Assembly: GCA_009103225.1 (NCBI GenBank)
Contig: RHPI01001715.1
Location: forward strand, 1,206,011 to 1,270,010
Origin: Chlorokybus atmophyticus
Lineage: Eukaryota > Plantae > Mesostigma and Chlorokybus algae
Direction: 5' to 3'
Length of the DNA: 64,000 bases
Below are positions 1,500 to 58,437 of this stretch, one piece after another. Position numbers and translations under genes: made by a program. The notes under the pieces were generated by a model. It was not told the origin of the DNA. It saw only the letters and a program-made list of their open reading frames with translations, and did no database searches. Numbering within the stretch: position 1 is the stretch's first letter; each line of letters begins with the position of its first letter.

Positions 1500-4400
1500 A
1501 CTTCGTCGTAATGACTGCTGCGAGTGCCACAACCATTGCAACCGTTGATGCCGCACCCTCTGCAGCTGGCACACTCTCAACAATTGCCACTGCCGCACCA
1601 TTAAAGGTTCGTTTAGCCCTACCACCACACTTTAATGTCATTCAACATGTCCCGCGCGGACCGCAAGCAAAAGCGCGCCTGGGTGTTTGTTCTGCACAAC
1701 AAAAAATAAACAATCATTGCGTACAGACCAAGGGGGCAACGCACCACGAGTAGCCTGAGATGATCGCATTCTGCCATTCCCACCTCTAGAGTACCACACA
1801 CTTTCGGAGCCCACACAACAACCATTGCAGGATGAGATCATTGCAAACACTGCACCGGAGATGCGAGATCGTCTCTTCGGGGTCACCTATCAACAACATG
1901 CTGTGTTTGAATTAGCAATCCTGCTATTCTTGGCAATGCACGCAAAGTTGCAAGAGGCACCCGCTCGATCACGACAGGCAATGCCTGCTTAGCAAAGACT
2001 TGGACTTCGAGCCCTCACCATTGGACCCGCTCGAACTCTAGTGTCGCTCGGTGCAAGACCTCTTGGTGACCACATCAGACATTCTGCTAGGCGCTAACCC
2101 AGCACTTTGTTCAAGGGAGCCGGCAAGAGCTATATCTCAGCTCTTGAGCAAGCATACCGCTATCGATCGGATGCTATCAAGCGGCACAAGTGGATGCGCG
2201 ACGGCAGGCGTATGAAGCTTCACGTGCTGCTGCTAGCCAATCTGCATCCAAGTTGGCATCAGGCGTCGCTGGTTCTTCCACCACACTTGCGTTGGTACCA
2301 CCTTTAACCGTGATCACTCCGCTGGGGCACGTGCCCCTGTGCGCGCAGCTGCTGCTGACCAAGCGAGGGCGTTGGCGCGACAATAAAGGGGGGTAATTGC
2401 CCCGCTGCTTCCTTCCTTGGTTGTGGATATGCTCGAAAACCAGTGTGATATAGGGTGAGGTTACCTCACCCCATAAGGGGACACCACACAACGAGGTGGA
2501 GTTAGTATGGTAGGAGAGCAACAACTCCGTAATGCGCTCGTATATTAAACAGTCATGCTGCACAGGCCGGAGGGCAGTGCTTTAGGACAGATGATGGGGA
2601 TGCTGGAGGGCAGCGCAGCTCGAGCACGGATAGTGACATCCGCCGTTGACATCACCCTGATGTTCTCATGCTTGCCTTTGGCAATAGAGCATCTTGGTTG
2701 GGGGCGTTCATCCGTTCGCTTCGACAAGCATATGATGAAGTTGCCGCCACTGCTACGGACACCTTGGAGGGAGTGCAAGAGCCAATGCTACGGCTGCCAT
2801 GAGTAGAAGCAGCATCACAGCGTCGGCGCATCATCATCGCTCATAATCCACGCACGCAACAGACCAACCTTCAATGCGCCATGACGGTGCTCGATGTGGG
2901 TGTGGTATAAGGAAGGTGGGATGCCTACATGGCAGGGATATTGCGGGTCCCCTGCATCACCCACGACATGCGGCGACAGCTACTATGCATAATGTACCTG
3001 CAGCCCATGCCGTAATATCACCACTGGACCGATGTGGACACAGAGCCCACGGCCACGTTTGAAGGGGCATTTGTCTGTGAGGCAGCTTATGCTGACCGAT
3101 GGACCTACGCCGTAGAGCAAGCTGATCGCGAGGCTGGCCCACAAACACAGGGCCCACCAAGCTTCCCTTTGACACAGCCATCGGGAACACCAGCAGGCAT
3201 GATTCCAACCGCTCAAAGGCGGCACCCACCATCACCTCCACCACAACCAGCACCGGAACCCCCAGCGCAAAGACCTCCACGTGTCTATCGCCCAACACAA
3301 CAAGGTCGGTTTGGCAGAGGGAGAGGGCAAGGAGGGGATCCCCAAGACCCAGCAGGCAGAGGAGCTCTGGCTGCAATGCGCTCAGCACCCTCAGCTAGGA
3401 GATGTGAGGTACAGGTGCCAGCAGCCCACCAACAGAGGCTGCGCATCAATGCCAAGGCTGTCATGGTCGCCAACCAAGGCAAGCATGTAACTTTCAACGA
3501 CCTGGCACCCAAGCATGTGATGCTGGTTACCGGAGCACAACCTGTCATCATCGGGCGCTTTCGTGCTCGGTCCCTCAGCATCACTAGCTCGCACTTGATG
3601 CTATGTCCGTATGTGTTGACACTGCCATCGGCAGTCGCGATAAGGTGATGGGGGTCACTGAGGAGGCTTTCTGCATTCGGTTAACAGAGTTGGACCCAAC
3701 CCACACCACAGATATCGGTTAGCAATGCGTGGTCACCAATGCCGGCTCCTTCGTTTTTCTGCCTGGGCAGGGCTTCAACTTCCCCGTGGGCATGGGCGGC
3801 CCATGATGGGCCGCGACGGCTGGATAGAGCGGGCTTAATTCCGGCCACATTGGGATGGGTTCAATCATAAACCCCCATCACAGCACCAACAATGCAACTA
3901 AAGCTCGACATGAGCTCGGCCCTGCAAAAGCAAACCCCACAGTTGCTGCCATGTTTGCTGTCACCGTGTTGCGATCAGGGCGCAAGTCTAGCACCGCTGC
4001 CACAACAGCAGCTGAGGAGATGCCCGCCGTTAAGTCAACCAGTCCTACACACAGCAAAGGGAGACACTCGCGCCACCGATGTTGAGGCCGATGATGTGGA
4101 GCTGGCACCCATTGACATCAGGCAGGACATATGGCTGGACCATACCTTTCCTTCCTCCAAAGTGGTCAGCTCTTTATATGCGTGAGTGCGCGTGACAAGG
4201 ACCGCGTCTGCCAACGCACTTAGCACCGCTGTGCAGATGACAAGCTATGTTGACGCCTTCATGGTAAAGACAAGGAAGTGCCGACACCAGCCACACGTGA
4301 GGGCATCATTGCTGCTCTCCACACTGAGCTTGGACAATGTGGTATCAAACGAACAGGCAGCCCGGTGAAGGCACAATATTGGTGGCATGGGTTGTACAAG

Positions 4401-42561: not shown

Positions 42562-45500
42562 CTAACAATGGTTTTCCAACTGATCGGAGCTTGGGCAGCC
42601 GTTCCGCGCAGTGTTTTGGTAGTTAAACTTGTTTATGGCTGCGTTCACTGCGCGTAGAACGGGTCTGTCAATTCAGGAAATCAAATAACATTCTTACGTA
42701 ATGTCACCACCCAAGCCACTTACGCCTTGTGGAATTAGCCGCATTGTACAAGGTGTGACGGAAGTCGAGCTTGACCGAAAGGGGACACTGAGAGTTGATC
42801 AACGTTTAGCTGACTCAGAAACAGGTGTATTGTGAGAAAGGAATGCATATAAGCATTTCCTACAAAACCTGTGCATAGTAAAGCGTTTCCGCATTGAGCA
42901 GAGCTGCGGTGGCCTCAGCTGCGAAGTAGTCGACCTGAGCAGTTCCACTGTCAATGCGCAAGCATGCTAAACAGCAGCATGCATGCAATCAACTCGTTAT
43001 TCTTGGCTAACACACGCGCTCACACGCACAAACAGATCCGCGGATAGGCTTGCACTGCACGTAAGCATGTGCTTAAAGTTGTGTGCACGCGTACCCCATA
43101 GAGACGGACATACCTGACGTGCGAAGGTGCTGAAAGCTTGAGCGACGGTACGGTTGCCAAAGAAGCTCTGAATGACCTGCACATACAGAGGCCATTTGTA
43201 CGTGCCGCACACACCGCGATTGCAAGCAGTAACTCAAGCTAACAACGAAGGAAACAGCATGAAGCACCCATACCCGCGCGTCCTGACTTGCACGACTAGC
43301 AAACGCATCAGCAAGCCTGGTGGAAGGCTTGATGTTGTTGGGGTGGTAGCACGTCAGAAGACTTCGCCACTGGTATATTGGACATCCCTCTTTCCCACGC
43401 ACTCTACCCTCCGGAAACGCCGCCCTGTCGACCACAAAATCAAGAGTGTGATGTTCATGTGAAAGCGTGTGATTGCATGGTTGTGTGTGCACAGACACTT
43501 ACGTCACGCATGACGGTGGGGTGTCAACTACTGTCACGTTGAGGCCGCGTGACACCTCCACACCTTCCTGGGAAAGCGTAACTGTAATGAGCTTGACTCC
43601 GGTAGTGCCGTACTGGCAGTAGCCTGTCTTGCTGCCCTGTCGCAGGCACCAGAAAGTCACTTGATAAGGGAAACAGTGCTGCAATTGCGTGCACACATGT
43701 GTGTGCGCTCACCACGTGCTCAGGACCACAGTCAATGGTCAGCGTGGATGGGAGACAGGCAGCTATGTTGGGAGAGGCAACGATCTGAATGGGCTCTTTA
43801 AGACTGGCTCTTGCATTGCGGCTTGCTGGGACAGCGCTTATGGAGGAGAAACTCGGGGGCGGTACGGGGCCAGTGACGGTGACATTGGTGGTAAGAATTA
43901 ACGGGACCGCGTTGGGGCAGGAGGCTGGGTCCTTGCTGCTTGCGCGCACGTGTATCGGGTACACCCCCGGGCGGAGATGAAGAGCGTATGGACTTAAAGA
44001 GGCTTGCGGCCCCGTTGCGTCGTCAAACTGACCGTCGCTGTTGAGGTCCCAGGCCAGGCCTCGCGCATTGCCGCACTCGTCGGCACCCCCGCTAGCAGCC
44101 ACAGTGACACTCCCGCCGCACAAGAGCGCTGTGTAAGGCCCTCCAATGCTGCATAGCCAAAAGGTGAGCAGTTGGTCACGACAACAAAGGTGACGGCACC
44201 GACAACAAAGACAATGACAACGACAAGACGCATGCAAGTGAAGTCGCACTCACTAGTAGGCAGCAACTGTGAGGCTGCGGGAGCGTATGACGGAGACGCC
44301 ATTCTGGGTCAAGTTTGCGGTAATGGTTTTCTGTCCAGTAGTACTGTACCGACAGAACGGTGTCCTCGTGCTCTGTGCACACGCTCGGTCGCACAGTCAG
44401 CAAAGGACTGTGGATGCAGAACGTGGCATGCAGCAACACAAACGCTTGCAACTCACCACGCTGCCTGCGCCGCAGTCAATAGTGAGGGTCCAAGGCAGGC
44501 AGTATATAACCGACCTCGACGTTGTGATCGCTACGTCTTCTGCTGTTACAGCAACTGGGTTGCCGCTGTCTAGACGTATGGATATGCTGATGGCAAGCTT
44601 GACACCCGCAATGACAGTCACATCGACTGTGTGCACTTCCATCGGAGAGGCGGCGCAGGCCGGGCTGCTGTAAGACTGCACGCGTACAGTGTGGACACCC
44701 GGAACGAGTTGTAGGCTGCTGGTGTCGAGGAGAGGCCTGCTCCCTGCGACCAAAAGGTGACCGTCGTTTTTGAAATCCCATGCGAGGTGACGCTGTGACC
44801 CGCACGCGTCGGTTTGAATGGGAGCTGCAAGAACAACGAAGTCACACGCGGTGACGCGGTATGGCCCTCCCATGCTGCACGCACGTACACAATCTGTTCA
44901 GTGTGATGCGTGCGCAATCAAGCTGGCAGAGTAGGTGTAGCAACAGCACTTACTAGAAGGCTGCGACCGTGATGTTGAATGAGCCAGACGCTGAGGCGCC
45001 AAACTGGTGAACAGTTGCAACGATGGTTTTGATGCCTGCGCTGGTGTATCGACAGTATCTATCCGGTTCACGTTCGTCAACCTGAAGCAGAACAAGTGTG
45101 TGTCAACAAACACCAACATGCGATCCAACATGCAACCACTGCGGCTGCACGCGAACCGCGTGACTCACCACACTGCCTGGACCGCAGTTTATATCCGTGC
45201 CATAAATCTGGCATTCTGCAGCATTGCTCTGCGCTGTGACTTCGATGCGCTCCTGAACGCTTGGAACCGCGTTGCCACTCGCTGGAACGGTTATCACGCT
45301 GCTGACAAATAGCGGCGCGATGGTGACGTTGACGGTGGTGCTCACGACCTCAGGAGGAGAGTTTGGGCAGGAGCTGCTGCTGCTGGCACGCACGCTGATC
45401 GTGTAGACTCCGCGATCTCTCGCACCCTCGTCGAAGGCGTTAAAGCTGGGATGGGGACCGGTAGCGTCGTCGAACACGCCGTCGTTGTTCAGGTCCCAAG

Positions 45501-48900: not shown

Positions 48901-50130
48901 AGTATACGTGTCAATATGTATCAATAGTAAGTTGATTGCCACATATGTATATGTGGTCTAACATGGTACAAGTGAGCTACTCCGGAAGTAACTCACTTAA
49001 AAGAAGTTTAAGAAGCTGACCAATTCAGTTTCATGGACGATATAATGATGACTTTGACCAAGGCTTGTATAAGTGAGGCGCTCACTTATAGGGTAGAAAT
49101 CGTGATATCAAGCTTCTGTACACGTGTTGTACGTTTATTTGTACAGGTGCTGATGCAAGAGAGGACCCTACAAGTGGGTTGTTTAATATGGATAGCTAAG
49201 GGGTTGCTAAGCCAAGTGAGATGAGCTGTGTAGCACAAGGTTCCAACTTAATTTCATGGTCTTGTAACGGGCGATAAGTTATTGCCCGCCGGCTATCGCC
49301 GATACCTGGTTGGGTTGCAATTCTTGCATACAAGTTAATAGTAGCAACTTTATGAATTGCATGCTCTTAGAGCATGCACACTCATATGCACACTAATATC
49401 ATAGCAGCATAATGATTGCGCTGCTATGATAGAGAACTACTATAATTCTAGTAATATAAGTAACCATTTACTACTATTGTACTACGTTGATTATTTACCA
49501 ACTATTACTACTATCAAGCATAACTGTTGCAAAAAGTTAACGACATCATTGCCAGATGCTAGCCATCATGTTTGCTGAGCTTTGTAACACGTTTGTCATA
49601 TATATGCTATCTTAGTATCAACGGCATCACACAAGTGGTGGGCAGCCTTTAATGACTTCAGCATTAGTATCCACATGCAATCGGCAAAATGTTGTCCGCT
49701 CACATGCCGAAACATTGAACAAAAAACCCCGCAGCGAGGATAGCTTCCAACCAAGCTGTTCGTCCCACTTACACTTTGCGTGCGTGACCCGCTGCCGCGC
49801 CGGACACCACTTTTTATGCTCATTTGCGACAAAGCCAACGAGAAATGGAGGGGCTCTTGGGAGCTAGCCGTGAAAGCGTTTCCATGCAAGGGATGTTGTC
49901 AATGGCACCAGAGCAGATGACAAGAACAGATGCATTGAGGCGCATGTGGGAGGTGTTGCATGTGTGGCTGATGATTGAATAATAGAAGTGCAATGTGTGA
50001 TCTCTCGTTACCGGTCAACAACACATACACCCATGGAGGCGATTTGTGCGACTGTGTTGGCTCACGAGCAACCACTACAAGTTGCCACCAGAACTTAATG
50101 CTCGCTGCCCCCCCCTCTCCCCCCCCCCCC

Positions 50131-50453
50131 TTTGCGGTAATGGTTTTCTGTCCAGTAGTACTGTACCGACAGAACGGTGTCCTCGTGCTCTGTGCACACG
50201 CTCGGTCGCACAGTCAGCAAAGGACTGTGGATGCAGAACGTGGCATGCAGCAACACAAACGCTTGCAACTCACCACGCTGCCTGCGCCGCAGTCAATAGT
50301 GAGGGTCCAAGGCAGGCAGTATATAACCGACCTCGACGTTGTGATCGCTACGTCTTCTGCTGTTACAGCAACTGGGTTGCCGCTGTCTAGACGTATGGAT
50401 ATGCTGATGGCAAGCTTGACACCCGCAATGACAGTCACATCGACTGTGTGCAC
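50131..50453 (-). repeat. 323-bp copy of 44314-44636 that is identical by eye (piece of paralog A repeat unit 2)
   Basis: Same sequence from TTTGCGGTAATGG to TGTGTGCAC; flanked by a poly-C run on the left and a single N on the right. Confidence 0.9.
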
Positions 50454-50754
50454 ATACATNCACATATGCTTACATAGGTGTATGTATGTGCGCACGAGAG
50501 CTGATCAAGCGGGAAACATCACTTGTAAGTCAGTTTTGCACGCTCACGCATAATATCGTGTTTAACGTATGCATTCTCATGTACTAATCATTTGCCTTGA
50601 TGATAGAGTACCCATCAAGCACAACATGAGAACCTTCGCACTGAAAATGTCTTCATACAGTGTGAAAAACATGCGCACACGCTCAGACGACAGCTGTCGT
50701 GCATTGCAAATACTTGATAATGCTTATTGCAAAAGATGTATCTTGAGCAGTTTA

Positions 50755-53700
50755 CTAACACTGGCTCTCAAAGTCGTCAGAGCTGGGACAACCGTTCTGC
50801 ACATTGTTTTGGGCCAAGAACTTGTTTATGGCGGTGGTCACTGCATAGAAAAACGAGATGTTGATAACATACATGCATGTGAATGGCACCATCAAGTCCA
50901 CTTACGTCTTGTGGAATTGCTCGAGTTGTACAAGCCGTGGCGGAAGTCGAGCTTGACCGAAAGGGGACACTGAGCATCAGCAAGCGCTTAGCTGCCGCAT
51001 GCACCAATGACTAAAAACGCAAGAAACGGGTGCATGCAGGGTACGAGTTGAGTACAAAATCCAACCTGCGCATAGTACGTCGTGTCCGCGTTAAGCAGAG
51101 CTGTAGTGGCCTCCCTTGCAAAGAGGTCAACCTAAGGTGTCCAAGTGTCAGTGAGCGGCACGCGCACTGGAACAGCATGCAAGTGATTGTCTTAAGACTC
51201 AGTCAAGGCTTGGCTGTCACGCGCACGAGCATGTACGCACACTAGGCAGACTCGAGCGTGCACACACAAGCACATACGTGCGCTCGTACATGAGCACTAG
51301 CATCCACACGGTGACCAACATACCCGGCGAGTTTGAATGATCAGGGCTTGAGCAATGGTACGGTTGCCAAAATAGCGCTCGATGAGCTGCACACGCGCAC
51401 ACGCAACTTCAGTATAGGTACCGCATATTGGCGCTGGTAAGCAGTAGCTCAGGCCGTAAGCAAACAAAGAAGCATACAGCATGTGTACCCGCGCATCCTC
51501 GCTGGCGCGGCTTGCGAATGCAGCAGAGAGCTTGGTATAAGGCTTGATGTTGTCAGGATGGTAGCATCGCACAAGCTGCCTCCATTGAGGCGTAGAACAG
51601 CCCCGCTTCCCACGCACTCTTCCCTCAGGGAATGCCGCCCTGTCAGTGTCACACATCTGAGAGTGGTGTTGACATGAGAGTGCGCGTGTGCGCGTGTGTA
51701 CACACTCACGTTGTGCATGATGGCGCCGTGGTGATTACTGTCACGTTAAAGCTGCTGGACACCTCAAAGCCTTCTTGTGAGAGCGTTACTGTGATGAGCT
51801 TGACACCGCTAGTGTCATACTGGCAGTAGCCTTCCTTGTTGCCCTGTCGCAAGCATCAGAGTGTCACCATGTGAAGTACACAGTGCTACAACCGCGTACA
51901 CACATGCGCGTGTATGCTCACCACATGGCCCGGACCACAGTTGGTACTCAGAGTGAATGGTAAACAGTATGCATCCAACTTGTACGAGACAAGAGATTGG
52001 ATGCTTTCATTAACATTGGCTCTAGCATTGCCGCTTGCGGGCACACCGCGCACGGAGTAGATTACTGGGGCCTTTATGCTGCCAGTGACGATAACGTCGG
52101 TGGTGAGAATAACAGGAACAGCGTCAGGGCATGAGGCGGGATTGCTGCTGCTGAAGCGCACGCTTATCGGGTACACACCCGGACGCAGATTTGCATAAAA
52201 TGTAGGGTTCCGCCCCGTCGCGTCGTCAAATAAACCGTCACCGTTGAACTCCCAGGCCGGGTTTCGCACTTGGCCGCACTCGTCCACGCCCCCGCCAGCA
52301 GCCAAAAAGGCACGCCCGCAGACGAGTGTGCGGTACGGCCCTGAGAAGAAGCTGCACACCAAAGAGCGAGCATTTGACCCGCAACAACGACAACAACAAC
52401 AACAACAAGACGCTTGCATGCGTGTTTGCACTCACTAGTAGGCAGAGACTGTGATGTTGTGAGACTTTGAGACGGAGACGCCATTCTGCGTCAAGGTTGC
52501 GTTGATGACTTTCAGTCCTGGAGTGTTGTACCGGCAGAAAGGTGACCCAGTGCTCTGTGCACATCAACACGCACACAGTCAGCGAAGGACTACGAGTGCA
52601 GTGCCTGACATGCGGCTACAACACAACGGCTTGCAACTCACCACACTGCCTGCGCCGCAGTCAAGAGTGACGTCCGAAGGGAGGCAGTATATAACCGTCT
52701 TCGACACATCGACGACTATATCTTCTCCTGTTACAGCAACTGGGCTGCCGCCCGCCGGACGTATGGATATCCCACGGATGGCGAGCTTGACACCCGCAGT
52801 GACGGTCACATTGATAGTATACACTTCTGTCGGCGAGGCGGGGCAGGCCGGGCTGCTGCTGAATTGCACGCGAACAGGATGGACACCTGGACCGAGGTTG
52901 AAAACACCGGTGTCGAGGTAAGGCGCGCTCCCTGTGAGATCGCCAAACAAACCATCGTTGTCAAAATCCCACGCAAGGAGACGTGGTCTTCCGCACGCAT
53001 CGATGGTCGTGGGAGCTGCAAGGCGAATCAAGCGACACGGAGCGGTGTGGTACGGCCCTCCCAGGCTGCACACACGTGAACACGCACGTACACGCACACA
53101 AGCGGTTAGAGTGCATGTGGTGTGAGCAATCCAGGCTGAACAGGTGTAACCACAGCACTTACTGTAAGGTCGCGACCATGATGTTGCGTGAGCGCGACAC
53201 AACGTTTCCAAACTGCGCGACAGTGGTGGTAATTGTCTTTATGCCTGGAGAACTGTATCGACAGTACCCCACCTCGTTACCCTGAGACAGTGCAGCAAGT
53301 GCGAGGACTTTAATCACCAACATGCGACCACTCCGGCTGCAAGCGCGCTACTCACCACACTGTCTGGACCGCAGTCTATGGTGAGGTTGTCCGGTGCGCA
53401 GCTAGCAGTGGAGCGCTGCACACTCACTTGGATGCGCTCTTGAACGCTCGCAATCGCACTGCCACTTGTCGTAGACGTTGCCACGCTGCTGATGGATAGC
53501 GGTGTGGCGGTGACGTCGATGGTGGTGCTCACAACTTCGGGAGGAGAGTCAGGGCAAGAGCTGCTGCTGGCGCGCACGCTGATGGTGTGAACTCCAGGGC
53601 TGAGCCCCTGGTTGTAGGCGTTGAAGTTGGGATTGGGCCCGGTAGCGTCATCGAACACGCCGTCGTTGTCCAGGTCCCAAGCTAATGAGCGCGCCGCACC

Positions 53701-56700
53701 ACATGCATCCGCGACGGTGGCGGCAGTCAAGCGGATGGTGGCGCAGATGCCAGTACGATACGGCCCTCCTATGCTGAAACACGAAAGAAGAAACTCAGCT
53801 GAGTGTGTGCATGCACGCGCTGTACTGAAGGGCCAATGCTTTGTTTGGCACTTACATCATTCTCACAACATTGATGTTATTGCTTTGGGAAACTGTGAAG
53901 CCAGCCTGCACCAGCGTCACCGTGATCACTTTCACTCCAGTGCTGTCGTAGCGACAAGCTTCTGTCCCGCTTGGGGCCTGTCATTGCGGGGGGGTGCATC
54001 ACAATCAGGCACATGCGCGCACAGGTTGTGAGTGCGGATGACACTTGAGCCAGCTAGCAAAGTTGAACCCCTACTTCAAGCACGCACTCACCACATTCCC
54101 TGAGCCGCAATCGACAGTTTGGGTAAAGGGCAGGCAGGTCTGCACGGTTTTGGACGTGATGATCTTAATGGTACTTCCGACGATCACGTTAGGCCCACCG
54201 CCCGGTGTAGATGCGGACACCTTGTTGATGACAGGGGGTGTGGTGGTGATGTTGACAGTGGTTGTGCGCACTATAGTAGGAGAGGCTGGACAGGAGGGGC
54301 TGCTGACTTGAGCACTTATTGTGCGCACGCCGAGGGGCAGGTGCCGGAGTTTGTTGTCAATAAGAGGAAAGGACCCGCTGGCATCGTCAAAGGCGCCGTC
54401 ACCGTCAAAGTCCCACTTGAAAACTCTGTTGTGACCGCAAGCGTCCTGACCCGCAGCCGCTGCCACTCGCACGACACCACATGCTGGCAGCTGGTAAGGC
54501 CCGGCCATTCTGGCGAATAGTCGTCATGATCATTCATGGTTGCTATCGTGCATATGCGCGTGTGTTTGCATGCAGCAGCACAACAACTTACGATACGGTG
54601 TTGACTGTGACGACGAGTTGCGCAGTTGCCACGAAACCAGCGGACTCCACCATCGCTGTGATAACCTTGTCTCCCGGGCTATTGTACTGACAAAAGTTCT
54701 CAGCAACACTTGGGTCCGGTCTCTGCCATCAGCAAAGGCATCTCATCTATGACTGTTGACTGTTGCAACATGCATGCATGCATGCACGCGGCCAACGCGA
54801 GCTCAACAACATCAGCAGCTGCTCACCACATTGTCCGGACCACAATCAACCGTGTAGCTGCGACTCTGGCAATAGGGGATATCAGTAACCGGAGTGACTC
54901 TAAACCGCTCTCCTACATGGGCTTCATTGTTGTCAGTCCTGGTTTCTGCGGTAAGGCTCCGGATGATAAATGCCCGCGGGCCGGGGACCGTGAGTGTGGT
55001 GTCAAGCACTATCGGGTCGGGTGAGGCAGCGCAGGGTGAGGGGCTACTGGCTCGAACTCTGATTGTGTACACGCCCGGGGGCTTCACGAAATTGTCGAGA
55101 TACGGTCTGTCCCCGACGGCATCGTCGAATGCACCGTCGTTGTCGATGTCCCACGCGAGAGTGCGATGCTGCCCGCACGCGTCAAACCCGCCGGATGCAC
55201 CCAGCTCAATGTAGTCGCTGCACTCCTCCAGGGTGTACGGCCCGGCACTGCACAATCGGCACAACAGAGCAGAGTGACACTCATGCGGCCAACATGCATG
55301 CTATGCAAGGACGCAAGGTCAGTGCGCATGTCCTTGCGTGTGTAGCTGGCGCCAGAAGGGCAAGCACGCTGCACGCTGCTGTCACTTACTATGGGATGGT
55401 GCCGATCGTTTGGGTCGTGCTCAGTCCGAAGCACCACTTGCCAGGCTGCAAAGGCAAGAAACAGATAAGTGGGACTGCCAAGCCTCTCCGGAGGACACAG
55501 GTTATGCATGCGTGCACAGGCACGCATGCAAATGCATGTGTGCATAAGCCTATGCGGCTGCAAAAGGCCGCATGTTGTTAGTTGTATGCGCATGTGCAAG
55601 CGTGATTGCATGCAGCGGTGCGGGCGGGCGAATGCATGCATGTATGCAATCTCGCTCGCCTCCAACGCTCGTTAAATGTGAAGAGCGACTGGAAGGAAAT
55701 TCTGCCCACCTGCCCGATGTTGGAACCTTGTGTGGTTGTATTGGCGATGGCAGCGGTGCGCCCGCCGGGCAGGCTGTAGCCGCGGATTCCATTCCCGACA
55801 TCGAAGCCAGCTTGAGCTGTGCAACAGAAGCACACGAACCCCAACCTCTTATGATCAGGTTGTGCACACAGCATGTGCAAGAGGGTGAAGTGTGTGGGGC
55901 TGGAGGGTGACCACATACCATGGTAGCTGTAGACGGTGGCAAGGCTAGGTTGGGGTCTATCGCTGGCGTACAGTAAGAAAAGGAAGGTTGTGTCGGTGTT
56001 GAAAGCAATCACTATCTGAAATGTTCCGGCTTCTTCTGTGAATGAGCAGCACCGTTTGACCTGCGCACATTGAAAAAGATGTCACTGCATCACATCTCAA
56101 CAGCGCACGTGCACGCGAACGCAGAGGCACACACCTTGTTCCAGGTGACAATGACGGCTGATGTTGCGGCGAAGCCAGCTGCAAGTTGTTCGGTAGGAAA
56201 GGCTTCACGAGCGTCGTCGCTGATGCCGGCAAGGACGGCCGTGTCGTCGACCGTGCGGTACGTGGTTTCGCCGCAGTCTGGGCATCTGGTGTCGAGGGCT
56301 GTCCAGAAGCCTGCCACCATGCTGTAGTACGTGGTTCGCTGAGGGAAGGGGAAGTTCACAGAACTGGACGCGGTAATCAACTTTTTGAAATGCAGTGCCC
56401 CGTTGCTGTTAATGTACAAGCCGCGTATGCTTGGAGAACCAAACACAGGCACTGCGGATGGCAGGGGGACCAGGTTGGAAGAACATGAATAGCACCTGCT
56501 CTCCACAAAGACACGGAGAGAGAGTTACATGCTCGGACTCGGACATCCTGGTGCTTGCCATCTGCAACAGGGCCATGCACAGTCTACACATGCATGCATT
56601 ATAGCCATGATCAGTGGGCTAGGCGCAGGACTATGTCTAACCCCAACAGCTAATGCAAGCCAGCTATGTGACAACAACGTCAACATTAGCCCTAACTTGA

Positions 56701-56868
56701 CAAGTCACCTTGTTGGCATTGCACAAACGCACAATCGGGCGACACAAATACGTACTTTTTCATTGTTTTGTCGCCATTGGCAGCACCAAAGGAGTAGAAC
56801 TCGTCCACTGAGAGGGCGGAGGCGCAGGCAGCTAGAAGCGCCAGAGACAGCATCCATGCCGCCGCCAT
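50755..56868 (-). CDS. Secreted mosaic protein: signal peptide - NIDO - 5 PKD/Ig-like repeat units - PDF1/FOCL1-like C-terminal domain; long paralog B
   Basis: MAAAWMLSLALLAACASALSVDEFYSFG; NIDO motifs LYINSNG, VAGFW..LD, IVTWNK, AGFDVGNG, SNIGQVGR; five GGPY...WDxxxDGxFxDxxG...DCG units; EATTALLNA C-terminal domain. Confidence 0.82.
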
Positions 56869-58437
56869 TGCCACTGGCGGCGGTGAAGAAGGAGAAGCTC
56901 GACCCATCCTTGCGGCCTGCAAAGAAGGCAAGCAGCCAAGCACAAGAATGGTCGGAGAAATCAAGGCCTATGTTTGCAGCTGAGCCGAAGGTTGTGAATA
57001 GGCAACCAAGCAATGGCGAACAGCAAAAAAACAGACTGAAGTGCGTGCATGCAAGCTTGAGCTCACGCACGCACGCACGCACGCACGCAGACATGCACAG
57101 CGGAGCAGCACACAGAGTGGAAATGCGAGGCGTCGGCAGCAGCAAGCGATCGCAGCAACAAGGCAGAGATAGCGTTTCAGACACAGACAGGCCCAAGCAC
57201 AGAGCACTCACCGGGCCGCACAACACAGCGTAGCGGCGGCGGCCACCAAGGGCACTGTGCGCTAGTCGCAAGTGAAGCAAAGCTCACATACACTTCTCTG
57301 CTTGCACAGGGCAAGCTCAGCTGTGGTACGGTACCACATCCCCGGCTTTGACATTCATAAAAAAGAAAAGACATATAGCTTACTGAAAGGTGCCATGTAA
57401 GTAAGCTACGTGACGTAAGGCCCAAAGCCTAAGCAAAGCCTAATAGTATTCGGCCAATGAGCCATTGCTTGGGGCTCTTCATTAAAGGTACATATCAGTC
57501 ACATCAGGCCAGATGCTGCGCGGCTGCCTACTCGTAGAGAGCGCGTGGTACTCCTGTGGGCAAGTCGCGGGTGCGTGCGCGGCAAAAGTGCAAGCTGCGC
57601 CTACCAACACCTACCAAACGTTACATCGGCTGTGGGTATAATATGCCAACTATGAGTCACGACTTATACCTTTAAGTCATAATGTGACGCTTAAAACCAC
57701 CGCACTGTCACTAAAACTGGCCGCAATTGCAGTAGGCTTGTTATGTGCGCTACTGAGAAATCTACCGCTAAGAAAACCGCCGGAGAATGTTTCACTGCAT
57801 TGCGTTTCTGCCCTGCTAGCAGTGCCCTCGTATATAGGCCTGCAGCAAGATTCGTAAGCTCCAAGCGGCGCGCGTTCAGGTGTACTACTACTTGCTTGAG
57901 CAAGACGCTGGTGCGTGCGGGGGGAAACCGAAAAGTAGTTGGGAGGAGAGACTCACGGTCCGTTTATACGTGAGTTACATGGATGAAGCTACAGGTAGCG
58001 GGCACGCGGTTGCCTGTAGGCGGGGACACCTGACTCACTTGACTCGCCTGAATTAATGCGAAGCCAGGCCTGTAGCCAAGCTGAGATACTGTCTAGCACC
58101 CAAGGCACCCAAACTCGCTCGTACTCTACCAATTCTAACCAAGCATGCTGGGCGCCTTTAGTCAAGCTACCAGGGGTGGCATTGCACACTACAGAACACA
58201 AACTGAATGTTGCATTGCATGCTTCATGTATGCGTTTTTGTGCATGCTCCCGAGTGTACCGACATGCAGTGTTGACATTTTGAGTTTGCGAAGCTTGTAA
58301 TGCCACAACGGCAAATAAACACATTACCATAACAATGAGCAATTGCAGCCAATTGCAGACAATCAGTACCAACAGTGCGAGCATGCACCAACATTTTCTA
58401 CAGCGGTAGGTAAGCTAGGTAGTGCAACGATACCAAA

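Follow-up and report, generated by a model that had tools for sequence, protein, structure and literature searches.

A transcribed Chlorokybus gene probably encodes a secreted protein combining a NIDO domain, PKD-like repeats and a divergent FOCL1/PDF1-type C-terminal domain

A mosaic gene in the Chlorokybus window

We describe a gene of the alga Chlorokybus atmophyticus located in a 64,000-nucleotide stretch of contig RHPI01001715.1 (assembly GCA_009103225.1, positions 1,206,011 to 1,270,010), which is referred to here as the window. The gene is transcribed and probably encodes a secreted, disulfide-rich protein in which a NIDO domain is followed by a stalk of PKD-like repeats and by a divergent member of the FOCL1/PDF1_C family, with a matrix role as the most likely function. 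PMC7027972 places Chlorokybus in the earliest-diverging streptophyte clade.

An earlier note, made from the letters of the window, had proposed a mosaic gene at 50755-56868 with a signal peptide, a NIDO-like region, five two-exon units resembling immunoglobulin (Ig) or PKD domains, and a C-terminal domain running from a GC..QW to a GCP motif, together with N-x-S/T sequons and no transmembrane segment. All of these elements were recovered there, on the minus strand, in a 20-exon model (Table 1). The stop codon ends at 50755, the start coordinate of that note, whose end coordinate, 56868, coincides with an ATG in frame; another ATG, at 56907, is the counterpart of the annotated start of P0001, a paralog described below.

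Spliced RNA and paralogs support the architecture

The region from 50.7 to 56.9 kb is coding on the minus strand, and the gene model was built by hand so that all introns are GT-AG, the frame is open and the phases are consistent. Of the words sampled from the 6-kb stretch, 51% and 34% occurred in two public RNA runs from two studies (X1 and X2), which is approximately the expectation for intron-free sequence. Spliced contigs from these runs match 15 of the 19 modelled junctions to the base, from exon 5/6 to exon 18/19 among the joints listed; the junctions 55247/55390, 54722/54827 and 54509/54592, for instance, are present in RNA contigs. Introns at RNA-matched junctions end in CT..AC when read on the plus strand. 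The RNA matches include the weak donor of exon 16 (GTACAC), which opens a stop-free 99-nt intron that keeps the frame, and the internal acceptor of exon 19, the sole option that keeps the last exon coding. A longer exon 19 acceptor disagrees with the RNA contigs and would lead to a stop in exon 20, and was therefore rejected. For the last junction and the four at the 5' end, the model relies on GT-AG ends, frame and colinearity with annotated paralog proteins.

The NIDO part and the repeats belong to one spliced mRNA, because a 1,492-nt contig from X1 crosses the exon 5/6 junction (55390 to 55247) and continues into unit 2. The 455 nt upstream of this junction have the length expected for NIDO exons 2-5, those pieces not being among the matches listed. 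The splicing check suggested in the earlier note, which allowed that NIDO and repeats might be separate genes, thus found them joined.

Relatives were sought among 1.84 billion representative proteins with a profile built from exons 16-17, which returned P0001, P0002 and one repeat artefact that matched intron columns. P0001 and P0002 are the C. atmophyticus gene models Chrsp31S04786 and Chrsp33S05072. P0002, a protein of 1,349 aa encoded on another scaffold, has the same architecture of NIDO, five units and C-terminal domain, with about 63% identity to the present protein in NIDO and 67-73% in the C-terminal exons. P0001, of 729 aa, maps 100% onto the tandem neighbour in the window (46002-42565, minus strand). 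Its signal peptide is followed by counterparts of units 3, 4 and 5 (64, 60 and 56% identity) and by a C-terminal domain with AEATAALLN, while NIDO and units 1-2 are absent.

Two observations thus argue against an artefact in which the model joined two adjacent genes (NIDO on one side, repeats plus C-terminus on the other) or pieces of a mis-assembly: the contig that links exon 5 to unit 1, and the same architecture in P0002 on a different scaffold. The point in favour of an artefact lies downstream, where a 323-bp stretch (50131-50453), 300 nt past the stop, is 100% identical to 44314-44636, part of unit 2 of the tandem paralog. Flanked by a C/G homopolymer (about 50108-50130) and a single N at 50460, this exact copy indicates that the assembly is imperfect nearby, and it has the appearance of either a very recent duplication or an assembly artefact. 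On balance, we regard an artificial mosaic as very improbable.

The earlier note had also suggested that no protein of this architecture was described, and the search agrees with it: no relatives outside Chlorokybus were found among the 1.84 billion representatives, in which the architecture is rare and confined to two clusters, both from Chlorokybus. The gene is an unnamed prediction in the published gene set, and the genome paper does not mention it; our literature search found no paper on this gene and none on a PDF1/FOCL1-type domain in algae or bacteria. The novelty lies in how the architecture is read, not in the sequence.

Table 1. Coordinates of the gene, its parts and the bacterial loci carrying the C-terminal domain. 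Positions are those of the window, except for the bacterial loci.
Feature	Position	Strand	Exons	Content or basis
Whole gene	56907-50755	minus	20 exons	CDS (coding sequence) 3,984 nt, 1,327 aa; stop TAG 50757-50755
Exon 1	56907-56756	minus	1	Start codon (alternative ATG 56868), signal peptide, first NIDO residues FYSFGAANGD
NIDO domain	56495-55390	minus	2-5: 56495-56135, 56060-55919, 55816-55710, 55445-55390	NIDO domain
Unit 1	55247-54592	minus	6: 55247-54827; 7: 54722-54592	Two PKD-like beta-sandwich domains
Unit 2	54509-53856	minus	8: 54509-54092; 9: 53977-53856	Unit alignment, RNA contigs
Unit 3	53773-53163	minus	10: 53773-53356; 11: 53281-53163	Exon 10 is the sequence folded
Unit 4	53065-52436	minus	12: 53065-52642; 13: 52554-52436	Unit alignment, RNA contigs
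Unit 5	52351-51710	minus	14: 52351-51922; 15: 51843-51710	Unit alignment, RNA contigs
C-terminal domain	51639-50755	minus	16: 51639-51489; 17: 51386-51324; 18: 51131-51066; 19: 50969-50906; 20: 50840-50755	About 125 aa, Cys-bounded
Bacterial locus L015	1767-2255			Solirubrobacterales metagenome-assembled genome
Bacterial locus L016	1734-2231			Solirubrobacterales metagenome-assembled genome
Bacterial locus L017	about 2001-2099			Solirubrobacterales metagenome-assembled genome

Further observations concern the transcripts. One X1 contig (depth 116) joins 51636 to 52796 and omits 1,159 nt; its GC..CC ends do not fit a GT-AG intron, and it may be a chimeric contig or the transcript of another paralog lacking one unit. 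Other contigs, from X1 and X3, are 90-95% alike over the C-terminal exons and parts of units (50907-51387 and 53509-54420), and one of them has a loose end at 50907 that leads on to an exon 20 variant carrying silent changes (LTTAINKFLA). These contigs show that Chlorokybus expresses further paralogs or alleles of the family.

The amino-terminal region

The hydrophobic core of the predicted signal peptide lies in exon 1 (...WMLSLALLAACASA), which contains the only window of 19 residues with a Kyte-Doolittle mean above 1.9 (1.98, the maximum of the protein); the same N-terminus is also annotated in P0001. The scan of the whole protein found no transmembrane-like segment after exon 1, and a glycosylphosphatidylinositol anchor or transmembrane tail was ruled out by the hydrophilic C-terminus. 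The 1,327-aa protein contains 11 N-x-S/T sequons and 44 cysteines.

For NIDO, exon 2 alone matches the Pfam family PF06119 with an E-value of 5.2e-16 and 59.6 bits, above the gathering cut-off of 25, and exon 4 matches the end of the profile (E 0.0017). In P0002, where NIDO is contiguous, the match reaches 96.1 bits (E 3.5e-27) over profile positions 3-183 of 186. Well-known extracellular proteins with this domain are nidogen, alpha-tectorin, MUC4 and SNED1. NIDO has been reported from streptophyte algae (Zygnema) and is reported to be absent from land plants (PMC11096116), so that this part of the protein belongs to known biology.

On the minus strand, the frame continues beyond the exon 4 donor (55709-55680) as VGRISFQ, a sequence that suits the NIDO profile end no less than PGKWCFGL of exon 5. 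This may reflect an alternative 5' splice site or what is left of an older exon end.

Fold of the stalk

Each of the five units, of about 180 aa, is formed by a large exon (139-143 codons) and a small exon (39-44 codons), and the units share 37-47% mutual identity. Across the eight large exons of the two genes in the window, 21 positions are invariant, including GPY, five cysteines and the loop W-[DE]-x-[DNK]-x-D-G. A unit comprises two beta-sandwich domains; the stalk would therefore hold approximately ten Ig-like domains, not five.

The fold was compared on the first half-unit, represented by exon 10. An AlphaFold 2 (AF2) model of this exon has a mean predicted local distance difference test score (pLDDT) of 78.7, with values of about 90 over residues 1-90, and shows one full beta-sandwich together with the first strands of the second. 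In the PDB, Foldseek ranked PKD-like domains of two collagenases, ColH and ColG, as the best matches, with template modelling scores of 0.66-0.74 normalized by target. VIA likewise placed six collagenase PKD-like domains above generic Ig domains (Z 9.2-10.2, root-mean-square deviation (rmsd) 2.1-2.4 A, 79-80 residues): the matches to ColH and ColG had Z 10.2, 9.6 and 9.4, the best being the ColH domain 4u6t (rmsd 2.1 A, 79 residues). Among the matches listed in a search of Atlas structures, 9 of 10 were bacterial or archaeal proteins with Pfam PKD families.

At the sequence level, P0001, P0002, the unit exons and the second half-units were all without a match to the Pfam PKD families (PF00801 and PF18911) at E<=10, and a profile search of both half-units against PDB sequences returned nothing significant. 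The small exon completes the second half-unit, in which a DCGxG / C-x-Y-x-x-x-G-x-K-x-I-T pattern recalls PKD, with no significant match. GEVED (PF20009), which we take to be a bacterial Pfam family, matches partially, at the WDxDxDG loop (profile positions 7-23 of 78; 29.1 bits summed over repeats), and the Pfam search gave no full-length GEVED match. A search for homologous proteins with the open reading frame of exon 14 was blank and carries little weight, its length filter excluding full-length relatives. Thus, where the earlier note spoke of bacterial-type PKD repeats, the fold and its bacterial and archaeal nearest neighbours agree, but family membership does not; the accurate wording for the modelled repeats is a PKD-like fold, not a Pfam PKD member.

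Relationship of the C-terminus to FOCL1 and PDF1

PDF1 marks the L1 layer, or epidermis, of plants. In PMC7177597, the C-terminus of FOCL1 (At2g16630), a protein needed for the stomatal outer cuticular ledge, is described as a "W-W domain" of unknown function that is conserved among type-2 PAC-domain proteins. According to that paper, a single exon encodes the domain, its range extends from bryophytes to Brassicales, and exon shuffling may have spread it. The supplement of the paper lists 40 W-W domains, with the FOCL1 sequence in supplement 7. We consider it quite likely that the C-terminal domain of the Chlorokybus protein is a divergent member of this W-W or PDF1_C family.

The motifs quoted in the earlier note (GC..QW, FGNRTIAQAL, EATTALLNA and KF..QN..GCP) are located in exons 16-20, and the domain occupies the extreme C-terminus, the protein ending in ...GCPSSDDFESQC before the stop. 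P0002 ends in GCPLTYC, with a C-x4-C spacing equal to that of the plant CxFxxC. Exon 18 carries the 9-mer REATTALLN, identical to Arabidopsis FOCL1; this central helix, conserved in the family as LLRE[AG]T[TA][AS]LLN[SA], reads REATTALLNA here, REATAALLNA in P0002 (as in grasses) and AEATAALLNA in P0001.

Plant sequences for comparison were obtained with the degenerate DNA pattern LLRE[AG]T[TA][AS]LLN[SA]Y, which yielded 14 plant FOCL1 exons from metagenome contigs, Arabidopsis included. In hhalign, the algal pair matched the plant W-W alignment with 76% probability (E 2e-5); under a relaxed accuracy threshold the alignment began at the first W, closed at the last C and spanned 107-110 columns at 28-29% identity (74-85% probability, E 3e-6 to 2e-5). 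The P0002 domain matched FOCL1 in BLASTP with an E-value of 1e-4. With a plant-only hidden Markov model (HMM), the algal domains scored 20.1 and 10.4 bits, higher than any of 2,000 shuffles. With an HMM built from plant and bacterial sequences (the latter are described below), the paralog domains scored 29.7 and 19.8 bits over positions 10-115 of 116, exon 18 alone reached 14.4 bits (E 1.7e-6), and the exons were colinear on the model, with exon 16 at 7-28, exon 17 at 30-43, exon 18 at 52-66 and exon 20 at about 102. A language-model feature search, of lead grade only, independently returned the cluster PDF1_C (PF27764 of Pfam 38.1, the "Protodermal factor 1 C-terminal domain") as the nearest named one, at rank 4 of 7.7 million with a score of 0.78.

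Because the plant sequences had been fetched by the motif, and the motif had already been noticed beforehand, controls without it were run. With the 9-mer masked, the plant-only HMM gave 0.8 and 2.2 bits (p 0.07 and 0.02). After deletion of the nine motif columns, hhalign scored 13.8 against 12.8+-2.8 for column shuffles, which is no signal. Pairwise alignments of the flanks were not individually significant; those between plant and bacterium were also only marginal, so the pairwise flank test has little power. The similarity to FOCL1/PDF1 is thus carried mostly by one 9-residue helix. Further points against the family assignment are that the W-X8-W signature is not kept, the first W being present (QW...RCYHP) and the second being replaced by H in P0001 and the present gene and by Y in P0002, and that the AF2 model of the domain, from a two-sequence alignment, is all helical with a pLDDT of 38.9 and is unusable. 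The W-W domain of FOCL1 is moreover presumed by us to be the PDF1_C family.

The results of hhalign without the motif, of the flank alignments and for W-X8-W would suit a domain that is specific to Chlorokybus and unrelated to FOCL1/PDF1, in which the REAT[TA]ALLN helix arose by chance or convergence among Ala/Leu/Thr-rich helices, as would the finding that the exon 16-17 profile reached nothing beyond Chlorokybus among the 1.84 billion representatives. We judge this unlikely. With the 9-mer masked, the plant plus bacterial HMM score was still reached by only 23 and 11 of 3,000 shuffles for the two paralogs (p 0.004-0.008). The first W, the CY[WH] cysteine, an FG/YG-N/T-x-T-[ILV]-x-x-[AG]-L stretch, the motif and the terminal GC / C-x4-C are colinear, and the C-terminal position and similar length are those of the plant proteins. 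The PDF1_C cluster was returned independently, and a rough estimate from residue frequencies gives about 1e-4 exact copies of the 9-mer expected in such a proteome. Divergent membership in the FOCL1/PDF1_C family therefore remains our preferred reading; the resemblance claimed in the earlier note stands, but mostly on one helix and with W-X8-W lost.

Other searches bear little on the question. Pfam and NCBIfam gave no match to the C-terminal domain, whole or by exon; genuine FOCL1 W-W exons were likewise unmatched in the same Pfam copy, and the Pfam blank on the algal domain is therefore no test. Searches for homologous proteins with the open reading frame of exons 16-17 and with the paralog C-terminal alignment were blank and say little, because the length filter excludes full-length relatives. 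A metagenome search with the latter alignment picked family-specific peptides and confirmed no locus. An Atlas feature search with an open reading frame that retained the in-frame intron returned noise, namely a Tn3 transposase at 0.9, under the level of recognition. Compared by eye, the bryophyte W-W sequences of supplement 7 (PMC7177597) look nearer to the algal C-terminal half than the angiosperm ones do.

Homologs in Solirubrobacterales

A motif scan of one genome per prokaryotic species confirmed three loci in Solirubrobacterales metagenome-assembled genomes. Two of them (L015 and L016) are intact open reading frames of 162-165 aa, flanked by ordinary bacterial genes, that encode a signal peptide and a single domain (GCSHGYWKNH...REATAALLNS...GCKLS). 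The third copy (L017) looks frameshifted, because the overlying open reading frame reads in another frame. Neither Pfam nor NCBIfam gave a name for these proteins. On the plant-only HMM, the bacterial copies scored 33-37 bits, and 8-12 bits with the motif masked, a level reached by <=2 of 3,000 shuffles. In BLASTP, a bacterial copy matched FOCL1 at 1e-8 over 80 residues and the algal domain of P0002 at 4e-7. The bacterial GCSHGYW and GCKLS have counterparts in the algal domain, which starts with GCSxxxW and ends with GC[P][SL][ST]. As judged by these scores, the bacterial copies are nearer to the plant domain than the algal copy is, and the algal copy appears to be the most divergent of the three groups. 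The domain family, on the same evidence, is not confined to land plants and does not appear to be a land-plant invention.

The earlier note had inferred a possible pre-land-plant context for the domain. A divergent algal copy agrees with this, but because Solirubrobacterales encode the domain in a form closer to that of plants, such a context is only one of several possible histories. In another, the domains would be homologous and the algal copy would not be a vertical forerunner: Chlorokybus could have received it from bacteria, perhaps together with the PKD-like repeats, or plants could have acquired theirs independently from Actinomycetota. The score order speaks for such transfer (33-37 bits for Solirubrobacterales versus 10-20 bits for the alga on the plant-only model, and BLASTP values of 1e-8 for plant and bacterium versus 1e-4 for plant and alga), as do the prokaryotic PKD proteins that are the nearest neighbours of the repeat fold among the matches listed and the loop resembling GEVED, presumably a bacterial family. 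However, the algal gene has 19 spliceosomal introns, its composition of 52-60% G+C shows no step relative to its flanks, the idea depends on three bacterial loci obtained with one pattern, and fast evolution in the alga would explain the score order equally well. We hold transfer to be rather improbable, somewhat less so than the absence of any relationship.

Predicted role and possible history

Taken together, these features suggest a secreted, glycosylated, rod-like protein with two interacting ends, the N-terminal NIDO and the C-terminal domain, the latter probably helical and closed by cysteines. Between them, five tandem units of two Ig-like beta-sandwiches each would act as a rigid spacer, as PKD-like repeats may do. 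The invariant W-D-x-D/N-x-D-G-x-F-D-D loop of the first sandwich resembles a Ca2+-binding DxDxDG site, and Ca2+ may therefore stiffen the stalk. Its most likely place would be in the extracellular matrix or wall of the mucilage-embedded sarcinoid cell packets, as an elongated component with a structural or adhesive role. Tandem and dispersed duplication gave rise to the gene family, with loss of NIDO and units 1-2 in the neighbouring paralog.

The interest of the gene lies mainly in the history of a plant epidermal domain. Tentatively, the C-terminal domain of FOCL1/PDF1 could be an old extracellular module that is shared with soil Actinomycetota and possibly of bacterial origin, that was already present in a NIDO/PKD-like matrix protein of the earliest-diverging streptophyte algae, and that land plants later re-used through exon shuffling on PAC or proline-rich wall proteins shaping the cuticle-bearing epidermis. 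If the algal assignment is true, the presence of the domain in an alga whose sister group comprises nearly all other streptophytes would date it before land plants, as would the Actinomycetota copies. The single-domain bacterial proteins and the algal matrix protein also offer systems for probing the biochemical role of the domain, such as its ligand. Independently of this history, the gene is a concrete, expressed example of the animal-type NIDO that survives in streptophyte algae and not in land plants (PMC11096116).

Comparison with known systems

With respect to NIDO, the protein resembles nidogen, alpha-tectorin, MUC4, SNED1 and the Zygnema proteins in being a predicted secreted multidomain protein with an N-terminal Pfam NIDO domain, whereas it is without their AMOP, VWD, EGF and G2 partners and has PKD-like repeats and a PDF1_C-like domain instead. 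The repeat units share with the PKD domains of ColG/ColH and of archaeal S-layers the fold, the tandem arrangement as an extracellular spacer and an acidic loop that may bind Ca2+. They differ in having no Pfam PKD match and in that each unit adds a further Ig-like domain, which contains Cys and is interrupted by an intron, with cysteines conserved within units.

The C-terminal domain is like the W-W or PDF1_C domain of FOCL1 in its length of about 115-125 aa, its place at the extreme C-terminus of a secreted protein, its start with W and C-Y-[WH], its central helix LLREAT[TA]ALLN (9/9 match) and its closing Cys pair. It differs from FOCL1 in having H or Y for the second W, an insert of about six residues before the FGN stretch and extra cysteines, and in being spread over five exons rather than the single exon of plants (PMC7177597). 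Its partners also differ, being NIDO and PKD-like repeats in the alga and a PAC domain or proline-rich region in plants. The Solirubrobacterales proteins share with the algal domain the GC...GC bracket, the GCSxxxW start, REATAALLN and a GC[KP][LS][ST] end, whereas they consist of a signal peptide and the single domain only and carry the bacterial GYWKNH.

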